Source: Zygophlyctis sp. KS116 (lineage: Eukaryota; Fungi; Chytridiomycota). Taken from it: a stretch of DNA of 14,421 nt. Positions 126 to 14,421 of this stretch are shown here, in pieces. The stretch lies in the NCBI GenBank assembly GCA_054661495.1, contig BAAFSQ010000249.1:1-14421 (forward strand), in the 5' to 3' direction. Position 1 is the first letter of the stretch. Every line of letters starts with the position of its first letter. The translations under genes were made by a program, and so were the position numbers. Under the pieces are notes generated by a model. That model had not been told where the DNA came from, did not search any database, and saw nothing but the letters and a program-made list of their open reading frames with translations.

Positions 126-935
126 ATGAAGTCGGAAATCCTGATTGGATCGTTTAGTGTTTTGAATGCTCTATTGGCTAATAAAAGAAGAATTATTAAA
201 GTATTGATCGCTGAAAATCTAGTAAAAACCCCAAAAATTAATCAAATTATTCAAGTTTCTCAAGATAAAAGTGTTGCATTAGAGACGAAATCTTCAAAAT
301 TCATGGATAAATTTGCCAATGATCTTCATCATCAAGGAATAATATGTCTTGCATCACCGCTATCTCTAGAATCACTGCGAGGTTTCACTAGTATTAACGA
401 TCAGGGAGAATATTGTGGAATGTTGAATTCAAATCTAAATTTAAATTTTAAAAAGAAATCAAGAGCTCCGTTATGGATCGGCTTAGAAGAAATTGTAGAT
501 CCAAGGAATTTAGGTGCAATTATTAGATCTTGTTATTATTTTGGAGTTGATGGTATAATTACAACTAGTAGGAATTCAGCTCCTATAAATGCAACAGTGT
601 CTAAAAGTAGTGCAGGTGCAGTAGAACTCATGCAACTTTATACAAGTTTTAATTTATCAAAGTTTTTAAGAGTTTCTAAAGAGAATGGATGGAATATATT
701 TGGAACTAATTTAAGTGCGTCGTCAACAGATATAAGAGAATTTAAAAGTCTAGGAGGAAATGGTAGTATATTAGTTTTTGGAAATGAAGGCGAAGGATTA
801 TCAGGATCTATTTCCAAGATTTGTAATCAGCATTTGATGATTAAAGGGGATCAAGTGAATCCAGAATTAGTAGATTCATTAAATGTTGGGGTATCAGCAG
901 GAATATTAATGCATGAATTTATTTCAAGAATTTAA
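126..935 (+). CDS. MRM1: SpoU/TrmH-family rRNA 2'-O-methyltransferase, MRM1/Pet56-like (probably mitochondrial); 5' end may extend upstream
   Basis: SpoU motifs DPRNLGAIIRS, LVFGNEGEG and VDSLNVGVSAGILMHE are present, plus the N-terminal substrate-binding HQG motif. A possible upstream exon 30-94 joined by a 30-nt intron 95-124 (GTTCAA...CTAAC...TATAG) is in frame with the ATG at 126. Confidence 0.85.
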   Translation: MKSEILIGSFSVLNALLANKRRIIKVLIAENLVKTPKINQIIQVSQDKSVALETKSSKFMDKFANDLHHQGIICLASPLSLESLRGFTSINDQGEYCGMLNSNLNLNFKKKSRAPLWIGLEEIVDPRNLGAIIRSCYYFGVDGIITTSRNSAPINATVSKSSAGAVELMQLYTSFNLSKFLRVSKENGWNIFGTNLSASSTDIREFKSLGGNGSILVFGNEGEGLSGSISKICNQHLMIKGDQVNPELVDSLNVGVSAGILMHEFISRI

Positions 936-1021: not shown

Positions 1022-2781
1022 ATGATGCAACCGCAAATAATCATTTTGAAGGAAGGAACAGACACTTCTCAAGGAAAGGGACAGCTTCTCTCAAATATTT
1101 CTGCATGCGAGACTATCGCAGACGTTGTCCGAACGACTCTAGGGCCACGGGGAATGGATAAGTTGATGGTGGATTCAAAAGGAGATGTAACAATTTCAAA
1201 TGATGGCGCAACTATACTCAAATTGCTAGATGTTGTACATCCTGCTGGTAAAGCTTTGGTAGATGTTTCTCGGGCCCAGGATGCAGAGGTGATTTGTACA
1301 ATTTAATCTTTTAGGTCGGAGATGGTACAACATCAGTAACTCTAGTCTCTGCAGAACTGTTAAAGCAAGTTAAACAGTTTGTTGAAGATGGTGTTTCTCC
1401 CCAAATTATAATGAAAGGATTTAGAAAAGGTTGTGATTTAGTAATTTTATTTTTAATTTTTAATATTAGGCTGTGAATAAAATTAAAGAAATTGCAGTCA
1501 CTATTGAAAAATCCAATGAAAAGGAATTTAGAAGTCTTTTGGAAAAATGTGCTGCAACTGCAATGTCTTCAAAATTGATTCATTCTCATAAAGACTTTTT
1601 CACAAAAATGGTTGTAGATGCTGTAATGTCTTTAGATCAAGAAGAACTAAATGAAAACTTGATTGGGATTAAAAAGGTTGCTGGAGGTGCAATGGAAGAC
1701 TCTTTGTTAGTTGCTGGTGTTGCTTTTAAAAAGACTTTCTCTTATGCTGGGTTTGAACAACAACCAAAAAGTTTTAAAAATCCAAAGATTCTTTCATTGA
1801 ATGTAGAATTAGAATTAAAGGCAGAAAGAGATAATGCAGAAGTTCGTATTGAACATGTAGATGTATGCTTGAAAACTTTTTTTTATAATGATTTAGGATT
1901 ATCAGTCTATTGTTGATGCAGAATGGTCAATCATTTATGATAAACTTGAAAAAATTGTTGCGACTGGTGCAAAGGTGGTCTTATCTAAACTTCCTATTGG
2001 AGATTTAGCTACCCAATATTTTGCTGATAGAGATATTTTCTGTGCTGGTCGAGTGGCTTCAGGTGATCTTAATAGAGTGGTAAAGGCTGTTGGAGGTGCT
2101 GTTCAAACGTCTGTAAATGATATTGAAGAAAAACACTTGGGACGTTGTGAATCATTTGAGGAAATTCAAATAGGAAGTGATCGTTACAATCTTTTTGTGG
2201 GATGTCCAATCGCTAAAACATGTACTCTAGTGCTACGTGGTGGAGCTGAACAATTTATTGCTGAAGTGGAACGCTCCCTTCATGATGCAATCATGATTGT
2301 ACGACGTGCAATCAAAAACAAGACTGTTGTCGCTGGTGGTGGAGCCACTGAAATGGTTTTATCTAGCTATCTCCGTCAGCACTCTCGAACTATTGAAGGA
2401 AAACAGCAAATGATTATTGCAGCAATGGCAAAAGCTTTAGAGATTATTCCTCGTCAACTTTGTGATAATGCTGGTTTTGACGCAACAGATATTCTCAATC
2501 AACTCCGTCAAAAGCACTCCAAAGGTATAATTTGAATTTTTTAAACAAAAGGGTTTAACTGGTATGGTGTCGATATGGAATCGGAATCAATTGCAGATAA
2601 TTTTGAAAAGTTTGTCTGGGAGCCTGCGCTCGTTAAAAGTAATTGTATCTCTGCAGCTACAGAAGCAGCCTGCTTGATTCTATCTGTTGATGAAACTGTC
2701 CGTAATGCGCAGGCTGATAAGCCTGACATGGGAATGCCTCGTGGACGTGGAAGAGGAGGTCGTGGAAGAGGTCGTAGATAA
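1022..2781 (+). CDS. CCT7: T-complex protein 1 subunit eta (CCT/TRiC chaperonin), 547 aa, 5 exons
   Basis: Exons 1022-1288, 1315-1440, 1470-1862, 1897-2524 and 2552-2781 total 1644 nt. GT-AG introns are 26, 29, 34 and 27 nt. Splicing restores [22 protein letters not shown] and WYGVD. Motifs TLGPRGMDK and [15 protein letters not shown] and the RG-rich tail match the eta subunit. Confidence 0.96.
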
Positions 2782-2985
2782 AAAAGACTGTAAAAGAAAA
2801 ACTAATTCTTTCAAAACTTTTTATTGAGAAAATGCAACCCCCTACTAATCTAAAGATATATTCACTACGATAACCTAGAATATAAATCAAAAAAATGACT
2901 TACCGTGCTATTGGAATAGCACACCGCAAGCTGGTCACCTTTATGGGACCAGGCCACTTCGAAAACACCACCATTACCTGCATCA
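1389..2985 (+). repeat. Tandem segmental duplication, copy 1 (about 1597 bp)
   Basis: Matches 3032-4628 at a constant offset of 1643, with identical ORF translations. The only internal difference I noticed by eye is T1431 vs A3074 (synonymous Gly). Confidence 0.97.
2845..2985 (-). pseudogene. Orphan 3' fragment of the TBL1/SIF2-like gene (last exon, last intron, part of penultimate exon)
   Basis: Copy of 4488-4628. It encodes [27 protein letters not shown]|VIVVNISLD* with the intron at 2875-2903 and has no upstream gene body. Confidence 0.88.
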
Positions 2986-3038
2986 CAGTTTTTAATTAGA
3001 TAGGTATCGGGATAATAGAAATCCTACATTTTGGTGTT
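2985..3038 (+). repeat. 54-nt templated insertion at the duplication junction, copied from CYC8 intron 3/exon 4
   Basis: ACAGTTTTTAATTAGATAGGTATCGGGATAATAGAAATCCTACATTTTGGTGTT is identical to 7573-7626, in the same orientation. Confidence 0.97.
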
Positions 3039-4424
3039 TCTCCCCAAATTATAATGAAAGGATTTAGAAAAGGATGTGATTTAGTAATTTTATTTTTAAT
3101 TTTTAATATTAGGCTGTGAATAAAATTAAAGAAATTGCAGTCACTATTGAAAAATCCAATGAAAAGGAATTTAGAAGTCTTTTGGAAAAATGTGCTGCAA
3201 CTGCAATGTCTTCAAAATTGATTCATTCTCATAAAGACTTTTTCACAAAAATGGTTGTAGATGCTGTAATGTCTTTAGATCAAGAAGAACTAAATGAAAA
3301 CTTGATTGGGATTAAAAAGGTTGCTGGAGGTGCAATGGAAGACTCTTTGTTAGTTGCTGGTGTTGCTTTTAAAAAGACTTTCTCTTATGCTGGGTTTGAA
3401 CAACAACCAAAAAGTTTTAAAAATCCAAAGATTCTTTCATTGAATGTAGAATTAGAATTAAAGGCAGAAAGAGATAATGCAGAAGTTCGTATTGAACATG
3501 TAGATGTATGCTTGAAAACTTTTTTTTATAATGATTTAGGATTATCAGTCTATTGTTGATGCAGAATGGTCAATCATTTATGATAAACTTGAAAAAATTG
3601 TTGCGACTGGTGCAAAGGTGGTCTTATCTAAACTTCCTATTGGAGATTTAGCTACCCAATATTTTGCTGATAGAGATATTTTCTGTGCTGGTCGAGTGGC
3701 TTCAGGTGATCTTAATAGAGTGGTAAAGGCTGTTGGAGGTGCTGTTCAAACGTCTGTAAATGATATTGAAGAAAAACACTTGGGACGTTGTGAATCATTT
3801 GAGGAAATTCAAATAGGAAGTGATCGTTACAATCTTTTTGTGGGATGTCCAATCGCTAAAACATGTACTCTAGTGCTACGTGGTGGAGCTGAACAATTTA
3901 TTGCTGAAGTGGAACGCTCCCTTCATGATGCAATCATGATTGTACGACGTGCAATCAAAAACAAGACTGTTGTCGCTGGTGGTGGAGCCACTGAAATGGT
4001 TTTATCTAGCTATCTCCGTCAGCACTCTCGAACTATTGAAGGAAAACAGCAAATGATTATTGCAGCAATGGCAAAAGCTTTAGAGATTATTCCTCGTCAA
4101 CTTTGTGATAATGCTGGTTTTGACGCAACAGATATTCTCAATCAACTCCGTCAAAAGCACTCCAAAGGTATAATTTGAATTTTTTAAACAAAAGGGTTTA
4201 ACTGGTATGGTGTCGATATGGAATCGGAATCAATTGCAGATAATTTTGAAAAGTTTGTCTGGGAGCCTGCGCTCGTTAAAAGTAATTGTATCTCTGCAGC
4301 TACAGAAGCAGCCTGCTTGATTCTATCTGTTGATGAAACTGTCCGTAATGCGCAGGCTGATAAGCCTGACATGGGAATGCCTCGTGGACGTGGAAGAGGA
4401 GGTCGTGGAAGAGGTCGTAGATAA
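3032..4424 (+). pseudogene. CCT7: 5'-truncated duplicate of CCT7, lacking the promoter, exon 1 and most of exon 2
   Basis: It starts within exon 2 at GVSPQIIMK and lacks the LGPRG and GDGTT nucleotide-binding motifs. Introns are at 3084-3112, 3506-3539 and 4168-4194. The first in-frame ATG is at 3054 (equivalent to Met122). Confidence 0.88.
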
Positions 4425-4628
4425 AAAAGACTGTAAAAGAAAAACTAATTCTTTCAAAACTTTTTATTGAGAAAATGCAACCCCCTACTAATCTAAAGAT
4501 ATATTCACTACGATAACCTAGAATATAAATCAAAAAAATGACTTACCGTGCTATTGGAATAGCACACCGCAAGCTGGTCACCTTTATGGGACCAGGCCAC
4601 TTCGAAAACACCACCATTACCTGCATCA
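3032..4628 (+). repeat. Tandem segmental duplication, copy 2
   Basis: Matches 1389-2985. It continues without a break into the intact TBL1/SIF2-like gene. Confidence 0.97.
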
Positions 4629-6233
4629 TAGTTTTTAACAATAGAGCCATCCTAAGTCTAAGTAAAAGATAATCTACCTTTATATTTCGAATTATAAACT
4701 TTTGATCAAATGATCCACTGGCTAAATATAGAGAATCTGGACTAAAGGCGACAGTATAAACAGCTTCTTGATGGTCTTGGAATTTATAGATACAGCAGCC
4801 AGCTAAAACATCAAATACTCTTACAGTGAAATCAAAGGATCCACTAAATGTTTAAGTCTAAAGATAATTCTTACGAGGCAATCAATTTCTTATCCGAATG
4901 GGGTGGGTTCCAACGAATTGTATAAATTTCTTTTTCGTGCCCAGTTAAATCGCACTTTGGATCTTCCGAATCCATTGTCCAAACCTTGACTGTATAATCA
5001 TCAGAGCAAGAAGCCAAGTACACGCCAGAAGGATCCCATCTTATAGCATTAACTTCCCCTTTATGTCCTGAAAACTGTTGAAGTGGTGCTAAAGAACCTA
5101 ATTGACATACAAATATTTGTTTATCATTTGAACATGTAGCAAATGTAATATCATCCCTCCAATCTACATCTAAACAAGGAGCTGAATGAAACTCAAATTG
5201 TTGCCTTACTTCACCAGAGGAAGGATCCCATACTATAGCAGTCTTGTCTACACTACCTGTAAGAAGAACATCCCCTTTTTTATTCCATTTTACAGCAAAT
5301 ATCGGCCCAGTATGTTTTTTGAGAATAGTCTTCATTTTCCCTAATTTTCAATATTATTAAAGTCTTACCTTGAATCGTCCAAATCCTAGCAATCCCATCA
5401 TATGAACCAGTAGCCAGCACTTGACCAGTTGGATGCCAATCTAAAGTTGTAACATCTTTAGTATCAGACTCTGAAGCATGTTGTAGTACTATTGGAGGAG
5501 CTTTAGAATCATTTATAGACCATATTCTTGCAGTCCCATCTCCTGACCTAAACCTTGAGATAAAGTAAAAATACCCAGTAGCAATCCATTCATCATCTCT
5601 ATTCCAAGCACAAGTAAAAACCTCTGCCGAATGACCATGATAACTAACCCAGTCTGATTTTTCCTGTATTATAATTGGAGAATCCATGTCCATACTATCC
5701 TTGCCATCTTCTTGTAAAGCACTATTTGCCATGACAGTGTTTGCCATGAGAGTATTTTCCATGACAGTGTTTTCCATGACAGTATTTGCCATGACAGTAT
5801 TTTCAAGAGTAGCTGGAACTAGCGGTACAAAAGCATTTGAAGGACTATCAAAACCTTGCCCATCAAGAGTTGGAAGAGTCTTTTTGTCCGGAATATGAAA
5901 TGTTTCCTGAAATTCCTCTTCTTCAACTCGTTGATTTTCAAGTATTTCACTTGGATCTGGATAAATTTGACATTCATGCGCCCCCAATAGTGTGAATGGA
6001 GCCAAACATTTTACAATATTACCTTGCGGCGAGACATGTGCTTCCAAAGACATATACAATAAACCCTTTTGTAGTATTCTTATTAAAAAACCTGGACCCA
6101 CTTGTGATCCCTTTATATCAGATTTTAGAATCCCAGACTCGTTTGCAAAAGAGAAACTAGAATGAGAGAACCCAGACTCTGTCAGATAGCGATAAATCAA
6201 ATAATTTATCTCATCAGAAGTGAGATTTGTCAT
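4488..6233 (-). CDS. SIF2: TBL1/TBL1XR1/Sif2-like LisH + WD40 corepressor subunit, about 534 aa, 6 exons
   Basis: The N-terminal LisH sequence [26 protein letters not shown] and WD40 repeats ([40 protein letters not shown]) are typical of TBL1. Introns 5574-5548 (27 nt), 5368-5341 (28), 4874-4844 (31), 4677-4652 (26) and 4546-4518 (29) give a 1605-nt CDS ending in TAG. The ATG is at 6233. Confidence 0.92.
5723..5812 (-). repeat. Coding 15-nt minisatellite (5 units plus 1 degenerate), encoding (E/A)NT(V/L)M pentapeptides in the LisH-WD40 linker
   Basis: On the + strand: tatttgccatgacag tgtttgccatgagag tattttccatgacag tgttttccatgacag tatttgccatgacag tattttcaagagtag. Confidence 0.93.
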
Positions 6234-6492
6234 TTCCTGCACCCTACCCTGCGCCACGTTTTAAGAATTTTACAAGAGAATTTTAACCCTCTAAAGTAAC
6301 CCTCTGAAAAAATTATAAACCTGTCGTGCGCTAATTTTAATAAAGAATTCCCTTCCTAACCTTGCATTTTTGAGTTTTGAGTCCATTTTTCCTAGTGTGT
6401 CCAGGTCCAGTCCTTTCAAAGCAAATAGTAAATTGAGAAAATTGAGCAACAAAATTTTAAATTTAAAAATTCTTTTGAAAAAAAAAAAAAAA
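6234..6492. promoter_or_regulatory. Putative bidirectional promoter between the TBL1/SIF2-like and CYC8-like genes
   Basis: 259 bp lie between the divergent ATGs. TAACCCTCT occurs twice (6284-6292, 6297-6305), and an A15 tract (6478-6492) directly precedes the CYC8 ATG. Confidence 0.6.
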
Positions 6493-8107
6493 ATGTCAAA
6501 AGCAGAATTAACAAAACTGACTCAATTGAATGAAAGTACTTGGATAAAACTAGGGAATTTAGCAAGTGAACTCTTGCCTTTTGAAAAAACTGTAAACTGT
6601 TATGAAATGGCTCTTCGTAGCTCTCCATTCTCAACTGATGCATTGAATGGATTGGCAACTTGTTATAGGAATCACGAACTCTATGGACAGGCTGCAGATA
6701 TATATCAAAGGTAAATATTATATTTTTCTACTTTTCTACTATTTCTACTATTTCTCTACTATTTCTCTAAATTCTAAATAAAATTATTTAGCGAAATTAT
6801 AGAAAATTAGAGGAAATTATTTAGCGAAATTATAGAGAAAATTAGAGAAAAATTATAGAGAAACTAATGCACTAGACTCATCAATTTACTTCCTCATAGT
6901 GGTGATACTTGGGGTGCGCTAGGTCATTGTTATTTAATGATGGATGAATTACAAAAAGCTTATTCTGCTTATCAACAGGCTCTATACTATTTAAAAAATC
7001 CTAGAGAACCGAAATTATGGTATGGAATAGGGATACTATATGATAGATATGGGTCTTTTGAGCATGCGGAAGAGGCTTTATGCGCAGTTTTACAAATGGA
7101 TCCGCATTTTGAAAAAGCAAATGAAATTTATTTTAGATTGGGAATTATTTCAAAACAACAAGGGAAATTTGAAACTGCTATAGAATGTTTCGAGTATATA
7201 TTAAATAATCCTCCTCCGCCATTAACAAGGAATGATGTCTACTTTCAGCTTGGTAAGAATAGGAAGGGATTCTAATGGATAGGTCATGTATATGAACAAC
7301 AATCTCAATCAGAAAAATCAAAAAATATATATGAATCTATTTTAAAGGAAAATCCTAATCATTCAAAGGTTTTGCAACAATTAGGTTGGTTATATCAAGA
7401 TACTAAAACAAACTTTCATGATGCAGAAAAGGCTATAAGTTTGTTACTAAAGTCTTTGGAAGTGGATGGAAAGGATGCTCAGTCTTGGTATTTGTTGGGA
7501 AGATGTTATATGCATCAACAAAAATATAATGAGGCGTATGATGCTTATCAACAAGCAGTGTATTTAAATTTTACAGTTTTTAATTAGATAGGTATCGGGA
7601 TAATAGAAATCCTACATTTTGGTGTTCAATTGGTGTTTTATATTACCAAATTAATCAATTTTCAGATGCTTTAGATGCATATGGACGTGCTCTTAGATTA
7701 AATCCTTATATTAGTGAAGTTTGGTAATCTATAAATTCTCTTATGATAGGTATGATTTAGGAACTTTATATGAATCTTGTAATAATCAAATCCCAGATGC
7801 AATTGATGCTTATTCTCGTGCACTTGAATTGGATCCTAATAATGCACAAATAAAGCAAAGACTGACTGCTCTTAGACAATCTCAAACTGCTACAAGTGTA
7901 AACTCTTCCACACCTTCTTCATCTGGAATTGCTTCTAGTAATATTCCTTCTACTCAGCAGCTACAGCGACTTTCTGTAGGCCTACCTCAAGTTGGAACAC
8001 CAAACTTGAATCCAACTCCAATTCCTAGTATGGACGCTGGTAAATCTAACCCAGACACGATTCCCAGGATTCAAAAGCCTTTAGATAATTCATCTCATCT
8101 AAAATAG
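6493..8107 (+). CDS. CYC8: Cyc8/Ssn6-like TPR general transcriptional corepressor, about 453 aa, 5 exons
   Basis: Splicing introns 6711-6875 (165 nt), 7253-7282 (30), 7560-7591 (32) and 7724-7749 (26) gives a 1362-nt CDS. It carries Ssn6 hallmark sequences WGALGHCYLMMDELQKAYSAYQQAL, PKLWYGIGILYDRYGS, AYQQAVYRDNRNPTFWCSIGVLYYQINQ and SEVWYDLGTLYESCNNQ. Confidence 0.94.
6711..6875 (+). other. 165-nt intron 1 of CYC8, filled by an imperfect fold-back of complementary simple repeats
   Basis: GTAAAT donor, ACTAAT branch site at 6863-6868 and CTAG acceptor. The left arm is (TTTCT[CT]ACTA)n-like and the right arm (TAGAGAAAAT)n-like. The centre is CTAAATA-aaat-TATTTAG at 6774-6791. Confidence 0.85.
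7573..7626 (+). repeat. Donor sequence of the 54-nt junction insert
   Basis: Identical to 2985-3038. Here it is integral to the CYC8 gene (acceptor site plus YRDNRNPTFWC), so this is the original copy. Confidence 0.95.
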
Positions 8108-8112
8108 ACGAT

Positions 8113-8733
8113 TTATTCTTTAACAACTCCAACTTGAGCAGCCCTCAGAACTCTTCCAACAATTTTGAATCCTGTTTTTTGAACTGCAAAAATAGTTCCT
8201 GGTTCTTTTCCTGGCATTTGAGCTTGAAAGAGAGCAGAATGATAATTAGGATCAAACTTTTCTCCAATTGGATCATGTTCTTCAATTCCAAACTTTTTCA
8301 ATGTATGATGTAATTCATTTCTAGTCAATTGCACTCCAGTGTATAAATCCTTTAATGCCTTGTTTGACGATCCCTCTGATCTTTCAGCTTCTGGCACAGA
8401 CTTTAACGCCATTGTAAGAAAATCCGATGTATCTAATAAATCCTTTGCAAACTTTTGAATAGAATATGCTGCAGTATCATCAATTTCTCTTTGAGATCTT
8501 TGACGAATATTTTCAGCATCAGCCAATGCTCTTCTATATAAATCTTGTAAAATCTTTATTTGCTTTTCCTTTTCTTCCAGTAATTTGATTGGATCAGACT
8601 CTTCCTTTACTTCCTGAGCTTTTGATTCAGTATTTTCTGAATTTGGAGGAGGAGAGCTAGCAGATTGAAGGCGGTATGACTGATGCATGAATGCATTCCG
8701 AGGCACAAGGCGCAAACGACAGATTCTGTTCAT
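8113..8733 (-). CDS. MGE1: Mitochondrial GrpE nucleotide exchange factor, 206 aa, intronless
   Basis: GrpE motifs RALADAENIRQR, IQKFAKDLL, GEKFDPNYHSALFQ and GRVLRAAQVGV are present. The Arg-rich, acid-free N-terminus resembles a mitochondrial presequence. Confidence 0.95.
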   Translation of the reverse strand: MNRICRLRLVPRNAFMHQSYRLQSASSPPPNSENTESKAQEVKEESDPIKLLEEKEKQIKILQDLYRRALADAENIRQRSQREIDDTAAYSIQKFAKDLLDTSDFLTMALKSVPEAERSEGSSNKALKDLYTGVQLTRNELHHTLKKFGIEEHDPIGEKFDPNYHSALFQAQMPGKEPGTIFAVQKTGFKIVGRVLRAAQVGVVKE

Positions 8734-8762
8734 AAAAAAACTAACCTCGGCCTAGCACACTA
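8734..8762. promoter_or_regulatory. 29-bp spacer between the divergent start codons of MGE1 and MSF1
   Basis: The sequence is AAAAAAACTAACCTCGGCCTAGCACACTA. Promoter function is inferred from gene geometry only. Confidence 0.5.
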
Positions 8763-10094
8763 ATGAAACCAAAGTCTTGTACAATCATTCTACGATGCAT
8801 GAGTAATGCAGCTATAAAGGAAAATATTTTGATGAAATTTAAATCGGATTCAATGACTAATGTTCCTGAATCTATTTTATCAAAAACAAGGATTCGGTTG
8901 CACAATATTCCGAATTCTCCGCTCTGCATACTCAAAGAGAAAATTCAGAATTGGTTTGATAAGAGTGAAGAGGGGATTTATGAAAAAGTGTCAATGAAAA
9001 GTCCAATCGTCTCAATCAGAGATAATTTTGATGCTCTATTAATTCCTAAAAATCATATTTCTAGATCTAGATCTGATACATATTATATAAATTCTGATCA
9101 TGTTTTAAGGACTCATACATCTGCACATCAGTCAAGTTTACTATCGAGTAAAAGTTCAATGGGATATCTTGTGACCGCTGATGTTTATAGGAGAGATGAA
9201 ATAGATGCTACTCATTATCCAGTGTTTCATCAAATGGAAGGAATAAGGTACAGTTTCTTGAATGATTTGATTTTTCGCAAATTTAGTACTAACGGAAAAA
9301 GGTTGTTTTCAAGAAATGAATTGGAATTAGAAAAAATGACTCCAAAGATTAATGCACTTGCTGTAAAGAATTCTAGTATACAGGTAACAGATACGGAACT
9401 TTCTACTGAAAATGGATATCAATCGGGTCATTTGGTTTTAGAACAACCAGTGGTTACTAAACATTTAAAGAATCATTTGGAGGGTCTTTTTGCTCATCTT
9501 TTTCAGAGTGACAAGCAAGATTCTCCTCTTAAAATGAGATGGATTGAAGGGTATTTTCCTTTTACTCAGCCGAGTTGGGAATTGGAAGTTGAATTCAGAG
9601 GGAAATGGTTAGAAGTTTGTGGATGTGGAATGATTCAACAAAAGATATTAGAGTCTACTGGGAATCATGATCAAGTTGGTTGGGCGTTTGGTTTGGGCCT
9701 AGAACGGATTGCAATGGTTCTTTTTGATATTCCAGATATCAGACTTTTTTGGTCAAATGATGATAGATTTGTGTCGCAATTTGAATCTGGAAAGATTTCA
9801 AAGTTTGTTCCTTTTTCAAAGTATCCTTCTTGTTACAAGGATATAAGTTTTTGGTGTGACAAATCTTTTCATGATAATGATTTTTCTCAGATTATACGTG
9901 ATGTTGCAGAGGATTTAGCAGAATCTGTCTCGCTGATTGATACCTTTGTTCATCCAAAATCAGGAAAAACAAGCAAATGTTATAGAATTCAATATAGATC
10001 CTTTGAAAGGACTCTTGCGAATGATGAAGTGGATAAGCTACATGAAAATGTCGGGAAAATGCTAGTTAAAGTTTGGAATGTTGAAATACGCTAA
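8763..10094 (+). CDS. MSF1: Mitochondrial phenylalanyl-tRNA synthetase (monomeric, with C-terminal anticodon-binding domain), about 425 aa after splicing
   Basis: Motifs LRTHTSAHQ, DVYRRDEIDATHYPVFHQMEG, YFPFTQPSWELE, GWAFGLGLERIAM and a C-terminal FDX-ACB domain are present. A probable in-frame 54-nt intron at 9248-9301 (GTACAG...TACTAAC...AAAG) is read through by the ORF track. Confidence 0.95.
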   Translation: MKPKSCTIILRCMSNAAIKENILMKFKSDSMTNVPESILSKTRIRLHNIPNSPLCILKEKIQNWFDKSEEGIYEKVSMKSPIVSIRDNFDALLIPKNHISRSRSDTYYINSDHVLRTHTSAHQSSLLSSKSSMGYLVTADVYRRDEIDATHYPVFHQMEGIRYSFLNDLIFRKFSTNGKRLFSRNELELEKMTPKINALAVKNSSIQVTDTELSTENGYQSGHLVLEQPVVTKHLKNHLEGLFAHLFQSDKQDSPLKMRWIEGYFPFTQPSWELEVEFRGKWLEVCGCGMIQQKILESTGNHDQVGWAFGLGLERIAMVLFDIPDIRLFWSNDDRFVSQFESGKISKFVPFSKYPSCYKDISFWCDKSFHDNDFSQIIRDVAEDLAESVSLIDTFVHPKSGKTSKCYRIQYRSFERTLANDEVDKLHENVGKMLVKVWNVEIR

Positions 10095-10112
10095 AACTAA
10101 TCAAAAATTCTT

Positions 10113-11570
10113 TTATAACAATCTATCTTTTGGTTCTTTCCAAGGCTCCCCTTTCAATTAATTTTTGTAAAATCTTAATTACCTAGAGCTTCAAAGACTT
10201 CCATTTCCGTTTTACTGGCAATTCTATTTACAGAGCCATCATGTTCTACTAAGAACAACCCATGTTGACTTAATTTCATTCCTTTAGCCTTTGCCGATTG
10301 CCGTAAACGACGATTAAACAAGTCATTTCCAGTCCATTGAATCAATGTAGATCCCAGTTCATCAATGGGAACTATGACAATATCTATTCTTCGCCATAAT
10401 GATCCTGGAACATTCAACTTACAAAGTCCTTTATAAAGGTCATGATCGATAGAGAGGTCTGTAAGATGTATCATCTCCATGCCAAATTCTTCTATTTTCT
10501 GTAAAATCAGCTTCATTGAGTGACCAGATGACCATTTTGAATCCGAATGCGTGACTTTGATTTAGTTTAACCTCTTACTAACAAAATCCGCATCTCCAAA
10601 TTCAGACTCTTCTTTTCTAAAAGATCCCGCCATGAAAACCAAAAATCCAGAATCTACTTTTTTGATTGCGTCCGAAACTATTTTATGGATTTGAATCATT
10701 TCTTCGCACCCAATTTTTGTATTAATATCAGAGTAATACTTTAAACCAATCTTCTGATCATGAGTCAACTGCTCCTCATGCTTTTGCACATCCTCTAAAC
10801 TTCTCCAACCCATTTTATACCACTTACTGGCAATTGCATCACCCACACCATATATCCCCTTGAATAAATTAACTACTCTGTCAATCTCTTCAATATTTGG
10901 AATAGCTAATTTTCCTGATTTTAATATTTCGTCAATCTATATAATGTAAATTGGCAATACATACCTTTTCAGCAATCGATTTCCCAACATGTGGCAGCGT
11001 TTGTGCTTGTTTTCCAGACGTTATAATCTGATTTGAATCTATAATACTCTGTATAGCTTTTCTATAAGCCAAAACTTTAAATTTATCCTTTTTTAGTTTA
11101 TGATAATTCATGCGATTCACTAATTCTTGAATCAGTAAATCATTTGATTTAATAAGTGGTTCCTCCTGCATTCCTGAACCAGTTTTTGAATCTTGTTGGC
11201 GTTCTATAATATTAATAAGGGATCAAATATAAATCCTCTGGATGTTATACTTGATGAGAAACATCATTACTTTTAGCAGGTGAAATTACACGATTTACCG
11301 GCATCAATCGCCCATTCTCAATGCAGTCATCAATCCATCTGATATCAACCCAGTTCAAGTTATGATTGAATTTAACGGGAAGACCATTCTTTGATCTTGT
11401 ATTTGCACTTAGTACATAATCAACGTCATCTGAATATTGATCAACGATGGTGCCACCTTTTGTTAGAAAATTTCCTTACCAAAAGAGGACCATTTCTGAC
11501 TTAATAACTCTAGAAACTTTGACTCTATACTAGGCGATATCCATAGCTTTAATTTACTGAATAATGGCAT
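10113..11570 (-). CDS. Family X DNA polymerase (Pol4/lambda/mu-like) with N-terminal BRCT domain, about 427 aa, 6 exons
   Basis: ATG at 11570. Introns are 11479-11457 (23 nt), 11270-11204 (67, donor uncertain), 10964-10937 (28), 10578-10555 (24) and 10182-10151 (32). Motifs include BRCT (FGGTIV...WIDDCIENGRL), 8-kDa/HhH (AYRKAI, LPHVGKSIAEKI, IYGVG), catalytic GDADF and RRIDI, WTGN..FNR.LR, LSQHGL, and C-terminal EPKDR. Confidence 0.9.
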
Positions 11571-11773
11571 TGGAATGTACTAAAAAGTCTCTACTAAAGT
11601 TGGCCCGTTATAAGCTCGCAAAGTTAAACGATAAACACGAGCAGGCTCCTGTACAACAAGAACAAAAGCCGATGGACTTGGCAAGTATACAAAAGGATGG
11701 AGAAGAAAATATAGATTTGGATGATATTACTGCTTTTCTTGAAAATGATGTTGCATTGGATCCATGCTTATAG
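11564..11773 (+). CDS. Hypothetical 69-aa protein (basic N-terminal half, acidic C-terminal half)
   Basis: It is an ATG-TAG ORF filling an otherwise empty gap in a genome with tiny spacers, and the composition is protein-like. I recognise no family. It overlaps the PolX start by 7 nt. Confidence 0.4.
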   Translation: MALECTKKSLLKLARYKLAKLNDKHEQAPVQQEQKPMDLASIQKDGEENIDLDDITAFLENDVALDPCL

Positions 11774-11829
11774 AATTGCCGGAAGCTTCAAATTTGAATT
11801 TTTGAATGCGACAATTCATGGACAAACGA

Positions 11830-11861
11830 TGGAACAATAGCGGAACAACAGTGGAACAATA
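11830..11861 (+). repeat. Three tandem 11-nt units (YGGAACAAYAG) upstream of the helicase
   Basis: TGGAACAATAG CGGAACAACAG TGGAACAATA. Confidence 0.75.
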
Positions 11862-11938
11862 TGGGATGATCAGCATTCATGTATATAGAATATTTTAATT
11901 AGTAGCAGTAAAACTTGTTTTTTAAATCAAAGTAGAAA

Positions 11939-14126
11939 ATGGCTCCGGCTCTGAATGATCTTTTGAAACAATTAAGTCTTAAAAACAATACAAGACAATC
12001 GGATAATCACAGAGGTAGCTTAAATGGACTCAGATTACCTTCATTATCTTGCTTAACAGATCTTGATAATGGTCTCATGACTGTAAAATCTATGCCAAAA
12101 CCAAAAGAAATACCTCTGGTTTTTCATTCCTTAGAGCATTATATGGTTGTAATGCATGGAAATATAGAAGCTGAATATTATGAGGCAGTAAGTAATGCAA
12201 TTTCGGTTGCAAATTCACAGGAAGATTGTTGGCATTATTTTTCACAGAATAAGGAAGGTAACATGATAGTTCCGGACTTGAGAGCTGGAGCAAAGGATGG
12301 TAAAGCAGACGCTCAAAATGTTGAAAAGGAGTCTTGGACAAATCATATTATTCAAATTCAAGGGAGTATGGATTTATTGTTTGTTAAATACTTTAATGTT
12401 GAGACTGGTGAAGTTATTTTGCCGATTTCTGCTCTCACTGAAGAAGGACAAGTTCGTAGTTTGGGATATATTGGGAGTCATTTGTTACAATTTTCAAGCG
12501 TTTCCAGACTGACACTTTCGACATTGGTAAAAATGGTCTTGAATCCAAGCGTCTGTGAAGATTTAAAATGTGGGGATTCATATTTCCCCATCAGGGGAGA
12601 AGATTTGAAGGACCAGGAAACTCCCATCAATGATTCACAAGTAGAGGCCTTGTTGTCATTAAAAGGGGGCTTAGAAGTTATTCATGGACCTCCAGGAACT
12701 GGAAAGTCAACGACCATTTGGCATATAGTAAACTCTCTATTACTTCCAGGTATTTTGAATTTTACTAACCTATTCAGGATCTCAGTGTCTTATTACATGC
12801 TGTCGAAATCAGGCTGTTGAGGCCGTTATTGATAAAGTATCTTGTTTTGGTGCACTAGTGTTTGGAAATGATGATCGACTAGGACCAAAAGGGAAAATGA
12901 ATACACTTACAGGTCATTTGAAGCGTGACTCAGAAGTGTTATTTTGGGATCGTATTGGAAATATTTTATCCAGATTTCTCGAAAAATTCGATCGGATTGA
13001 ATCGCAATTATGGAGAGATCTCCGAATTTCTTATCAAGGCATTGCAAATCTGCAGAAAAATGGTAAAAAAACCGTGGAAGGTTCAAATGGTGCTCAATTA
13101 TGGTTTGATGCTCTAAAGAAGATTTTACCAGATATAGCTATGAGACTTCGACTATCTCCTGCTGAATTAAAGTTTTACAACATAGTGAAAAGAAAGTTGC
13201 GTGGATGGAAAGCTTTAGTTTCAAATATTGCTACTCATGTGCATTCTTTAAGAAAAACGCACATTCTTTCTCAAACTAGACTATATTTGTGCACTATAGA
13301 CTCTACTAGCAGAATGGCCAAGGCTCTTGCAGAACATGAAGTTGATTTGAAATTGGATACATGCATTGTTGATGAAGCTGGATGTGTTTTGGAAGTGTCT
13401 ATCCCTATACTGTTACGCTTTTGTCCAAATAATTTGCTTTTAATTGGTGATCATAAACAGCTTCAACCTTTTTCATCTGTTCAGGTTGATCAGCACCGAG
13501 TCACAAATCATACTCGAAGTCTTCTTGAAAGAGCTGTACTATGTGGAGTTAAGGCCAAAACGCTAACTATGCAGTACCGAATGCACCCTTCAATCTGTTC
13601 AATTGTCTCTGATTTATTTTATGAAAATCAGTTAACTACTAGCTCATCTATAGTGCGAGATAACAAGAATCCTTGTATTTGGTTTGATGGCCACTTTCAA
13701 GAGACTAAGCATGTTCGACGTGGCTATTCCAATTCTCTTGAGGCTGAAAAAGTTTTGGAGCTTGTAAAGATTTTGATTGAATCCAATCCAAAATCTACAA
13801 TATTCGTGATTACTTTCTACAATAAGCAGAGATTAGAAATTATGAAATTATTGGAGCGAGATGCATCCATTAAGAGTGAAATGAACAAGGATTTAATATC
13901 AGTCTTATCAGTTGACAAATGTCAAGGATCTGAAGCAGACTATGTGATATTATCAACTGTGCGCAGCTCTGGTGTAACAAAATTTCTCCAAGACAAAAGA
14001 CGAGTCTGTGTAGCATTGTCGCGAGCTAAACAAGGAATGTGGATTGTTGGAAATCATCAAAATTTTATGCTAAGAGGGGGATCAATGTGGAAGAAAATTA
14101 CAAATCATTTCACAAAGTTTGAATAG
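11939..14126 (+). CDS. Upf1/Sen1-like superfamily 1B helicase (DNA2/NAM7 family, AAA_11 + AAA_12), about 719 aa, 2 exons
   Basis: A 28-nt intron at 12750-12777 (GTATTT...TACTAAC...CAG) joins the two ORFs. Motifs: Q motif INDSQ, Walker A HGPPGTGKST, Ia CCRNQAV, II VDEAG, III IGDHKQLQP, QYRMHPSI, ITFYNKQ, SVDKCQGSE and RRVCVALSRAK. Confidence 0.92.
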
Positions 14127-14421
14127 GAAATTTTAATAGTCTAGAAATTGTTTTCGTTTCAATCATTTTTGACGATCCTCTATTCAATAATCCCAATTGA
14201 GATAAAAATGGTTCAAAGTATTTCTATTGGGGCATCACTGCCAATATATGGCACACCTGTCTTTGATAAGCATTCATCTTCTCTTCAATGATGTATGAAT
14301 GCCCATTTCGAGGGTCTTTATAAATGGTACCAACTGGAAGTCTATGATAAACTCATCCAAATTGATGCAATAATTCTTAAATAAATCCAGTCCAGTTTAA
14401 TATACAAGTTTTCTTAACATC

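Follow-up and report, generated by a model that had tools for sequence, protein, structure and literature searches.

How did a gene-dense chytrid genome come to carry 1.6 kb of coding DNA twice, with the two copies joined by a short piece of a third gene, and did this happen in a living cell or during the handling of its DNA? The question is raised by a single contig (C249) of the 12.73-Mb Zygophlyctis sp. KS116 assembly, which comprises 1175 contigs. This contig was analyzed in its entirety, and its 14,421 nt, with a G+C content of about 35%, are referred to below as the window. The locus represents one structural variant of a well-described class and carries a known kind of scar. Based on the sequence comparisons described here, we assign a probability of roughly 0.6 to the reading that the nuclear genome truly contains a young tandem duplication at this place, probably polymorphic rather than fixed.

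The window contains a compact series of genes with very short introns:

126-935, forward strand: SpoU-type rRNA methyltransferase gene
1022-2781, forward strand: intact CCT-eta (TCP-1 eta) gene, identified by its open reading frames and the Pfam domain Cpn60_TCP1
4488-6257, reverse strand: intact TBL1/SIF2-like LisH-WD40 gene, identified by its open reading frames and Pfam matches (stop codon at 4488-4490)
about 6490-8107, forward strand: TPR gene, with Pfam TPR matches on the exons flanking the donor sequence described below
downstream of the TPR gene: GrpE gene, followed by the gene for mitochondrial PheRS
about 10175-11171, reverse strand: Pol X polymerase gene, recognized by the Pfam labels of matching gene calls in two related contigs (L035 and L036, see below)
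last in the gene order, following mitochondrial PheRS together with Pol X: helicase gene
1445-1473, 4518-4546, 4652-4677 and 7560-7591: spliceosomal introns of 26-32 nt with GT...AG ends

The homologs of the first duplicated gene carry the source name "T-complex protein 1 subunit eta", and those of its convergent neighbor are named "transducin (beta)-like 1". The TPR gene looks Ssn6/Cyc8-like when judged by eye, and the Pol X gene, which adjoins the gene for mitochondrial PheRS, encodes HHH_8, DNA_pol_lambd_f, palm and thumb domains. In a protein word search with the exons, the nearest named protein came from Nowakowskiella. Within the TBL1-like gene, six tandem 15-nt units (5723-5812) encode repeats of pentapeptides.

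The duplication proposed in the first-pass annotation was recovered, with two copies in direct orientation:

1389-2995, forward strand: copy D1, 1607 nt (99.876% identity in a self-BLAST comparison)
3032-4638, forward strand: copy D2, 1607 nt, direct repeat of D1

The copies are offset by 1643 nt, a repeat period that is made up of the 1607 bp of duplicated sequence and 36 bp of filler, and they differ at two positions only, namely T at 1431 versus A at 3074 and C at 2986 versus T at 4629. D1 extends from the middle of exon 2 of the CCT-eta gene to its stop codon (2779-2781) and, after a spacer of 63 nt, continues into a fragment from the 3' part of the TBL1-like gene. D2 starts with a 5'-truncated CCT-eta gene that lacks exon 1, and at its other side the TBL1-like gene has an intact 3' end. 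The two genes are convergent, with 63 nt separating their stop codons in D2 (4422-4424 and 4488-4490), and the end of the duplication at 4638 cuts a Val codon in the penultimate exon of the TBL1-like gene. The whole CCT-eta gene, whose first 367 nt lie outside the duplication, is thus composed of the left flank and D1, and the whole TBL1-like gene, up to about 6257, of D2 and the right flank. Since both genes retain one whole copy, the duplication should be neutral and cost the organism nothing. For users of the assembly, this layout means that neither the truncated CCT-eta sequence (3032-4424) nor the TBL1-like fragment (2845-2995) should be annotated as a gene. We also considered an in-frame fusion across the junction but rejected it, because the donor and CCT reading frames differ by one and the minus strand of the filler contains stop codons. 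At its beginning (3054-3119), the truncated CCT-eta sequence has a natural in-frame Met, that of ...IIMKGFRKG; if transcribed, it could encode a CCT-eta shortened at the N terminus by about 125 residues, among them the GDGTT nucleotide-binding motif.

The junction between the two copies can be broken down into a filler, its donor and two short homologies:

2985-3038, forward strand: junction, an exact 54-nt copy of 7573-7626
2996-3031, forward strand: 36-nt filler core found only in the donor, delimited by sequence comparison
3032-3038, forward strand: right microhomology TGGTGTT, identical at 7 of 7 positions to the end of the donor (7620-7626) and to the start of the duplication (1389-1395)
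2985-2995, forward strand: left imperfect microhomology, matching the end of the duplication (4628-4638) at 10 of 11 positions, with the donor's C at 2986
7573-7626, forward strand: donor within the TPR gene, consisting of the last 19 nt of the 32-nt intron 7560-7591 and 35 nt at the start of the exon that follows

The identity of junction and donor, claimed at first sight of the sequence, extends over all 54 positions, and the two terminal homologies described at that stage, TGGTGTT on the right and ACAGTTTTTAA (2985-2995 = 7573-7583) versus ATAGTTTTTAA (4628-4638) on the left, were likewise reproduced. As the copied stretch includes intron sequence, the template must have been DNA rather than spliced RNA. 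Measured from the donor, the two breakpoints are 2.9 and 4.6 kb away.

The combination of homologies that flanks the donor lies far beyond chance expectation. For this comparison, we reconstructed the unduplicated sequence of 12,778 nt and considered 25,404 candidate positions on both strands. A match of at least 10 of 11 positions to the end of the duplication occurs at four of these positions, one of which is that end itself, and a 7/7 match to its start occurs at six, again including the start itself. Only a single position among the 25,404 has both flanking homologies, and this position is the real donor. In the 12.7-Mb assembly, moreover, the junction stretch matches four places only, all of them on C249, so that the filler does not represent a repeat family; its sole other copy is the donor, and it belongs neither to a dispersed repeat nor to the tip of an element.

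To place the event in time, the window can be compared with a small set of related public contigs:

L036: ENA lake-metagenome scaffold of 14.9 kb, 96-98% identical to the window, with the same gene order and the segment in single copy (arrangement A-D-B)
L006: relative with about 84% identity, also single-copy
L035: Logan contig from SRR35554702, 99.9% identical to 6480-14299, with one SNP and one small indel
L007: ENA contig of 608 nt, 100% identical to 1301-1834, spanning the left boundary of the segment in its normal arrangement

The segment is present only once in both L036 and L006, which indicates that the duplication is specific to the lineage of the window and younger than the split of about 2-4% between the strains. 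The filler points in the same direction: the junction agrees with the window's own donor at 54 of 54 positions but with the donor of L036 at only 50 (four differences), as expected if it was copied recently and from the lineage's own gene. The initial description of the event as very recent is therefore softened to an origin after the 2-4% strain split, with a duplication that is probably polymorphic.

The same strain, or near strains, is represented in several lake samples labelled METAG, and no independent contig with the junction was found among records that may leave out the window's own genome. A degenerate pattern of the duplication start, used to look for the junction in metagenome DNA, detected only the 84% relative; the exact junction pattern was not found among genome contigs, and neither was the 34-aa open reading frame that crosses the junction in an exact look-up. 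Protein word searches with three exons retrieved the relatives together with L006, L007 and L035-L038, all of which lack the junction. L035 runs continuously through the donor. In Logan contigs, any 31-mer is represented once, and repeats in the graph are left unresolved (bioRxiv 10.1101/2024.07.30.605881). Had the 54-mer been present twice at comparable depth, L035 should have been interrupted at the donor, which suggests that the junction is absent from SRR35554702 or forms a minor branch there.

The related contigs also reveal the polarity of the two mismatches between the copies. At the first site (2986/4629), both the 97% identical strain and the 84% relative have a T at the position homologous to 4629, so that the C in the junction was copied from the donor, in line with the earlier proposal that the junction retains the donor's base. 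The second site shows the opposite relationship between the copies:

1431, forward strand: T in the functional CCT-eta gene, a derived base that makes a synonymous codon (GGT); its partner 3074 has the ancestral A (GGA)

The ancestral A is shared by L036 and four relatives with about 84% identity, and the T recurs in L007, an independent contig of the same strain. The second copy, which is linked to the junction, is consequently neither a fresh nor a pristine replica of the first copy in its present form. Two scenarios could account for this pattern: the T may have arisen in the functional copy once the duplication existed, or the duplication may have arisen on another haplotype or in another strain, so that the contig would be a composite. 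Error-prone synthesis at the junction was also considered as the source of this mismatch and rejected, because the base linked to the junction is the ancestral one.

The location of the two mismatches calls for caution, as both lie within 50 nt of the junction, which is the picture expected from an assembler that walks a single collapsed node twice. A short-read assembler separates only those differences that fall within a k-mer of a branch, so that the identity of the copies in their interior says little about their age. The existence of "two copies" and their identity is thus partly a statement of the assembler. Taken further, this consideration leads to the idea that the junction is real but its tandem layout is not, with a 1643-bp circle or a dispersed patchwork copy having been threaded by the assembler into the chromosomal sequence as a loop. 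In a de Bruijn graph, the same loop would result from a tandem duplication, from a circle or from a short dispersed patchwork, the differences between the copies are confined to the 50 nt next to the junction, as if one node had been traversed twice, and on other contigs pieces of the CCT gene are fused to foreign DNA. However, no additional breakpoint was seen within the duplicated segment on C249, and the ends of the segment were found on no other contig of the assembly. In addition, a tandem duplication is the simplest path through such a graph and has a checked parallel in the same genome, the GCH1 duplication on contig C261 (see below). We therefore regard a misplaced circle or patchwork copy as quite improbable.

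An assembler would not be misled by homologies as short as 7-11 nt, which implies that reads spanning the junction must exist. Such reads could also stem from a chimera formed in vitro, if phi29 polymerase during whole-genome amplification, or a PCR polymerase, had switched templates twice on products that were branched or incomplete and the chimeric molecule had then been amplified and assembled. The chimeras produced by multiple displacement amplification (MDA) are intramolecular and short-range, and more than 70% of them are primed on 2-21 nt of complementarity (PMC1855051), which fits the 7 and 11 nt and the distance of about 3 kb observed here. Chytrid genomes of similar size have been obtained by single-cell MDA (PMC13391722). 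The 99.9% identical strain represented by L035 either lacks the junction or has it as a minor form, and no independent contig carrying it was found. On the other hand, inversion together with a deletion characterizes more than 85% of MDA chimeras (PMC1855051), whereas both switches at this locus are direct, with all three segments on the same strand and a net gain of DNA. Consistent with this difference, a 200-kb sample of the assembly contained no inverted near-identical repeats.

The bases at the two informative sites would also fit poorly with an amplification artefact. Phi29 polymerase has a strong proofreading exonuclease. Retention of the donor's C requires extension from a 3' G.T mispair, which this exonuclease should remove. 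Furthermore, the copy linked to the junction carries the ancestral A rather than the T of the dominant template, a discrepancy that would be decisive with regard to an MDA chimera solely for a clonal, haploid template and that loses its force for a heterozygous diploid or a mixture of strains. Finally, the strain occurs in samples that are labelled as plain metagenomes. Together, these considerations make an origin in vitro unlikely, and the balance leans toward a real event that is polymorphic rather than fixed.

Starting from a real duplication, we infer from its anatomy a cellular origin as well as a plausible order and direction of the switches and a set of candidate enzymes. The structure would be explained by a single event, during repair or replication, in which microhomology primed a change of template twice. 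The 3' end of a minus strand that copies the segment leftwards would leave its template at 1389, and the complement of TGGTGTT at its end would pair with 7620-7626 (7 bp), about 4.6 kb away in the unduplicated sequence. The TPR gene would then be copied for 43-47 nt before the strand detaches again and lands on ATAGTTTTTAA at 4628-4638. This second pairing would include one G.T mispair, located at the last or second-last base of the 3' end, and would be followed by extension or joining. The switching may have been replicative (MMBIR/FoSTeS), or it may reflect the end joining of over-extended ends after failed SDSA, in which case two 3' tails, each extended on the sister chromatid, would be joined and the T.G heteroduplex would segregate to C in half of the cases. 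In a fungus without Pol theta, the candidate enzymes would be Pol delta, Pol zeta or Pol X.

The direction of synthesis is suggested by the donor's C. Its presence in the product implies that the filler was made before the landing on ATAGTTTTTAA, i.e. as a minus strand; a plus strand switching first would have kept its own T. This reasoning applies to the replicative and the end-joining mode alike. The suggestion that minus-strand synthesis was primed at TGGTGTT thus appears reasonable now that the outgroups identify the C as the donor's base. We consider this direction favored rather than proven, because mismatch repair in a transient heteroduplex could give the same C. The retained C would further mean that the mispair was extended rather than proofread, and extension from a mispaired end is the behavior of a polymerase without proofreading activity.

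The first-pass annotation had left open whether the junction arose by FoSTeS/MMBIR or by polymerase-mediated end joining. Two template switches are supported by the homology at both ends, whereas Pol theta, the polymerase that this second option brings to mind, is a poor candidate. In animals and plants, templated insertions at junctions are considered the "smoking gun" of Pol theta (PMC12426944), and this enzyme can make use of mismatched microhomology (PMC13015775). However, Pol theta typically relies on minimal base pairing and takes as its template the sequence directly next to the break (PMC12426944). Compared with a priming homology of about 1-4 nt expected for this enzyme, the present locus has 7 and 11 nt, and its template is at a distance of 2.9 and 4.6 kb. 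In the fungi examined to date, a HelQ-like helicase that lacks the polymerase domain is the most that is present (PMC8469720). Consistent with this, a search of the whole 12.7-Mb assembly, which is incomplete, for family-A polymerases (PF00476) identified one locus only, the mitochondrial Pol gamma, recognizable by its DNApol_Exo domain and its similarity to the solved DNA polymerase gamma chain 9c51_A (E=4.8e-161). A helicase fused to a family-A polymerase, the arrangement typical of POLQ, was likewise not found in this incomplete assembly; the accompanying search for POLQ_helical was run without a positive control. Ku is represented at two loci, B-family polymerases at four and Y-family polymerases at three, as assigned at the family level. 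An origin of the junction by Pol theta-mediated end joining thus appears highly improbable.

Among the known systems close to the structure observed are the templated insertions associated with MMBIR (MMB-TI), covered by the Hastings/Lupski model and by data from yeast and human cells (PMC8421209). They involve a short insert whose template lies nearby on the same chromosome, microhomology or microhomeology with one mismatch at each switch, a return to the origin, a gain in copy number and tolerance of a mispaired 3' end. The locus shows an insert identical to a template on the same chromosome (54/54, with a unique 36-nt core) as well as perfect microhomology at one switch (7/7) and microhomeology with one mismatch at the other (10/11). 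Imperfect microhomology, including even an unmatched 3'-most base, is tolerated during the formation of such insertions (PMC8421209). There are differences in scale, as the templates in the yeast assay are located within about 100 bp (PMC8421209) rather than 2.9 and 4.6 kb away, and the homologies of 7 and 11 nt are long ones within the 2-12 bp reported for this process (PMC8421209).

The size and layout of the duplication are reminiscent of the small tandem duplications that result from failed SDSA in C. elegans helq-1 mutants. Those duplications span 0.1-10 kb (median about 1 kb), and their junctions show microhomology and in some cases a templated insert (PMC8654963). The 1.6-kb size, the direct tandem arrangement and the combination of microhomology with a templated insert are common to both. 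However, the joining step in the worm depends on Pol theta, which seems to be missing here, and the homologies at the present junction are longer and more similar to those in yeast. In that organism, microhomology-mediated end joining (MMEJ) uses 6-20 nt of microhomology and employs Pol lambda/Pol4 together with Pol delta (PMC12426944). The homologies of 7 and 11 nt fit this range, and the assembly contains Pol X, Ku, B-family and Y-family polymerases. Classical yeast MMEJ differs in that it yields deletions, and templated filler from a kilobase-distant site is not its usual product. The chimeras described by Lasken and Stockwell (2007, PMC1855051) share with the locus their local, intramolecular nature and the 2-21 nt of priming complementarity but not its direct switches, its retained mispaired base or its allele that differs from the main template.

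Two pieces of background bear on these comparisons. The BRCA1-type tandem duplications found in tumours are grouped with the failed-SDSA duplications. As for the replicative mode, Sakofsky et al. reportedly found in 2015 that MMBIR depends on Pol zeta/Rev1 and Pol32.

A parallel within the same genome is found in the region of GCH1 (C261:10906-13155), where two 1044-nt copies with 100% identity flank a filler of 162 nt. As in the window, long and near-perfect copies of host DNA bracket the filler, and the neighboring genes are whole. The fillers are of different origin, though: that at GCH1 belongs to a dispersed repeat family with at least 15 copies of 76-93% identity and a conserved end (...AACYGTTACAA), whereas the filler in the window is unique and local, with its donor on the same contig. 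The sequence CTGCATCA precedes the filler in both places and was therefore considered as a shared breakpoint motif; given that it rests on two cases with different kinds of filler, it is probably a coincidence.

Should the event be real, it would provide a fully readable natural example of a templated duplication with two switches in an early-diverging fungus that apparently lacks Pol theta, and templated filler alone could then not be taken as proof of Pol theta activity. It would also illustrate a way in which extra DNA can be added between convergent genes of a gene-dense genome while both genes stay intact, and it may explain the long duplications of flanking sequence that occur beside insertions in the same genome. 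It is tempting to go one step further and speculate that this Pol theta-less chytrid has an active copy-and-switch repair, in which over-extended ends are often joined via homologies of 7-11 nt and any template touched in the process can serve as filler, and which also generates gene-sparing copy-filler-copy insertions that contain element tips or cargo genes. We consider this generalization possible but doubtful. If the same route does produce both kinds of filler, the locus would represent its clean case, with the donor, both homologies and the direction of synthesis readable on one contig.

A scan of the genome for similar duplications, recommended at the outset, was limited to 200 kb and returned one other near-identical pair, which is not of the templated-junction type but represents old tandem paralogs. 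These paralogs (C4:25627-32335) have a period of about 3.5 kb and have in part diverged to 72-94% identity. A stretch of 1120 nt (27736-28855 = 31216-32335) is nevertheless 100% identical between them, as a result of either gene conversion or assembly collapse.

Unusual joins were also noted in two environmental contigs that contain parts of the CCT-eta gene. L007 (ENA ERZ28594211, KAVA23-1_SAMEA14109795 scaffold_323193) switches, after the equivalent of window position 1834 in exon 3 of CCT-eta, to 74 nt of AT-rich DNA (535-608). In L038 (ENA ERZ19401448, GROS21-1_SAMEA9561015 scaffold_70124), a breakpoint in the same gene corresponds to window position 2445/2446. The first 920 nt of this contig represent the CCT-eta gene of the 97% strain (L036 3799-4718, 100% identity), and the remaining 1015 nt (921-1935) are unrelated DNA with a G+C content of 32%, into which the open reading frame runs on for 198 aa, followed by another open reading frame of 111 aa. 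The tails of both contigs had no match in the assembly or the retrieved loci and contained no Pfam domain. These joins reflect either recurrent rearrangement at this gene pair or a high frequency of chimeric contigs.

A last observation concerns the right-hand end of the window. Three independent assemblies of the locus end within about 150 nt of each other (window 14270-14421, L035 7799-7827 and the end of L036), and L035 carries an indel variant at 14277-14285 that is 6 nt longer. The sequence that follows this common contig end is probably a repeat or polymorphic.
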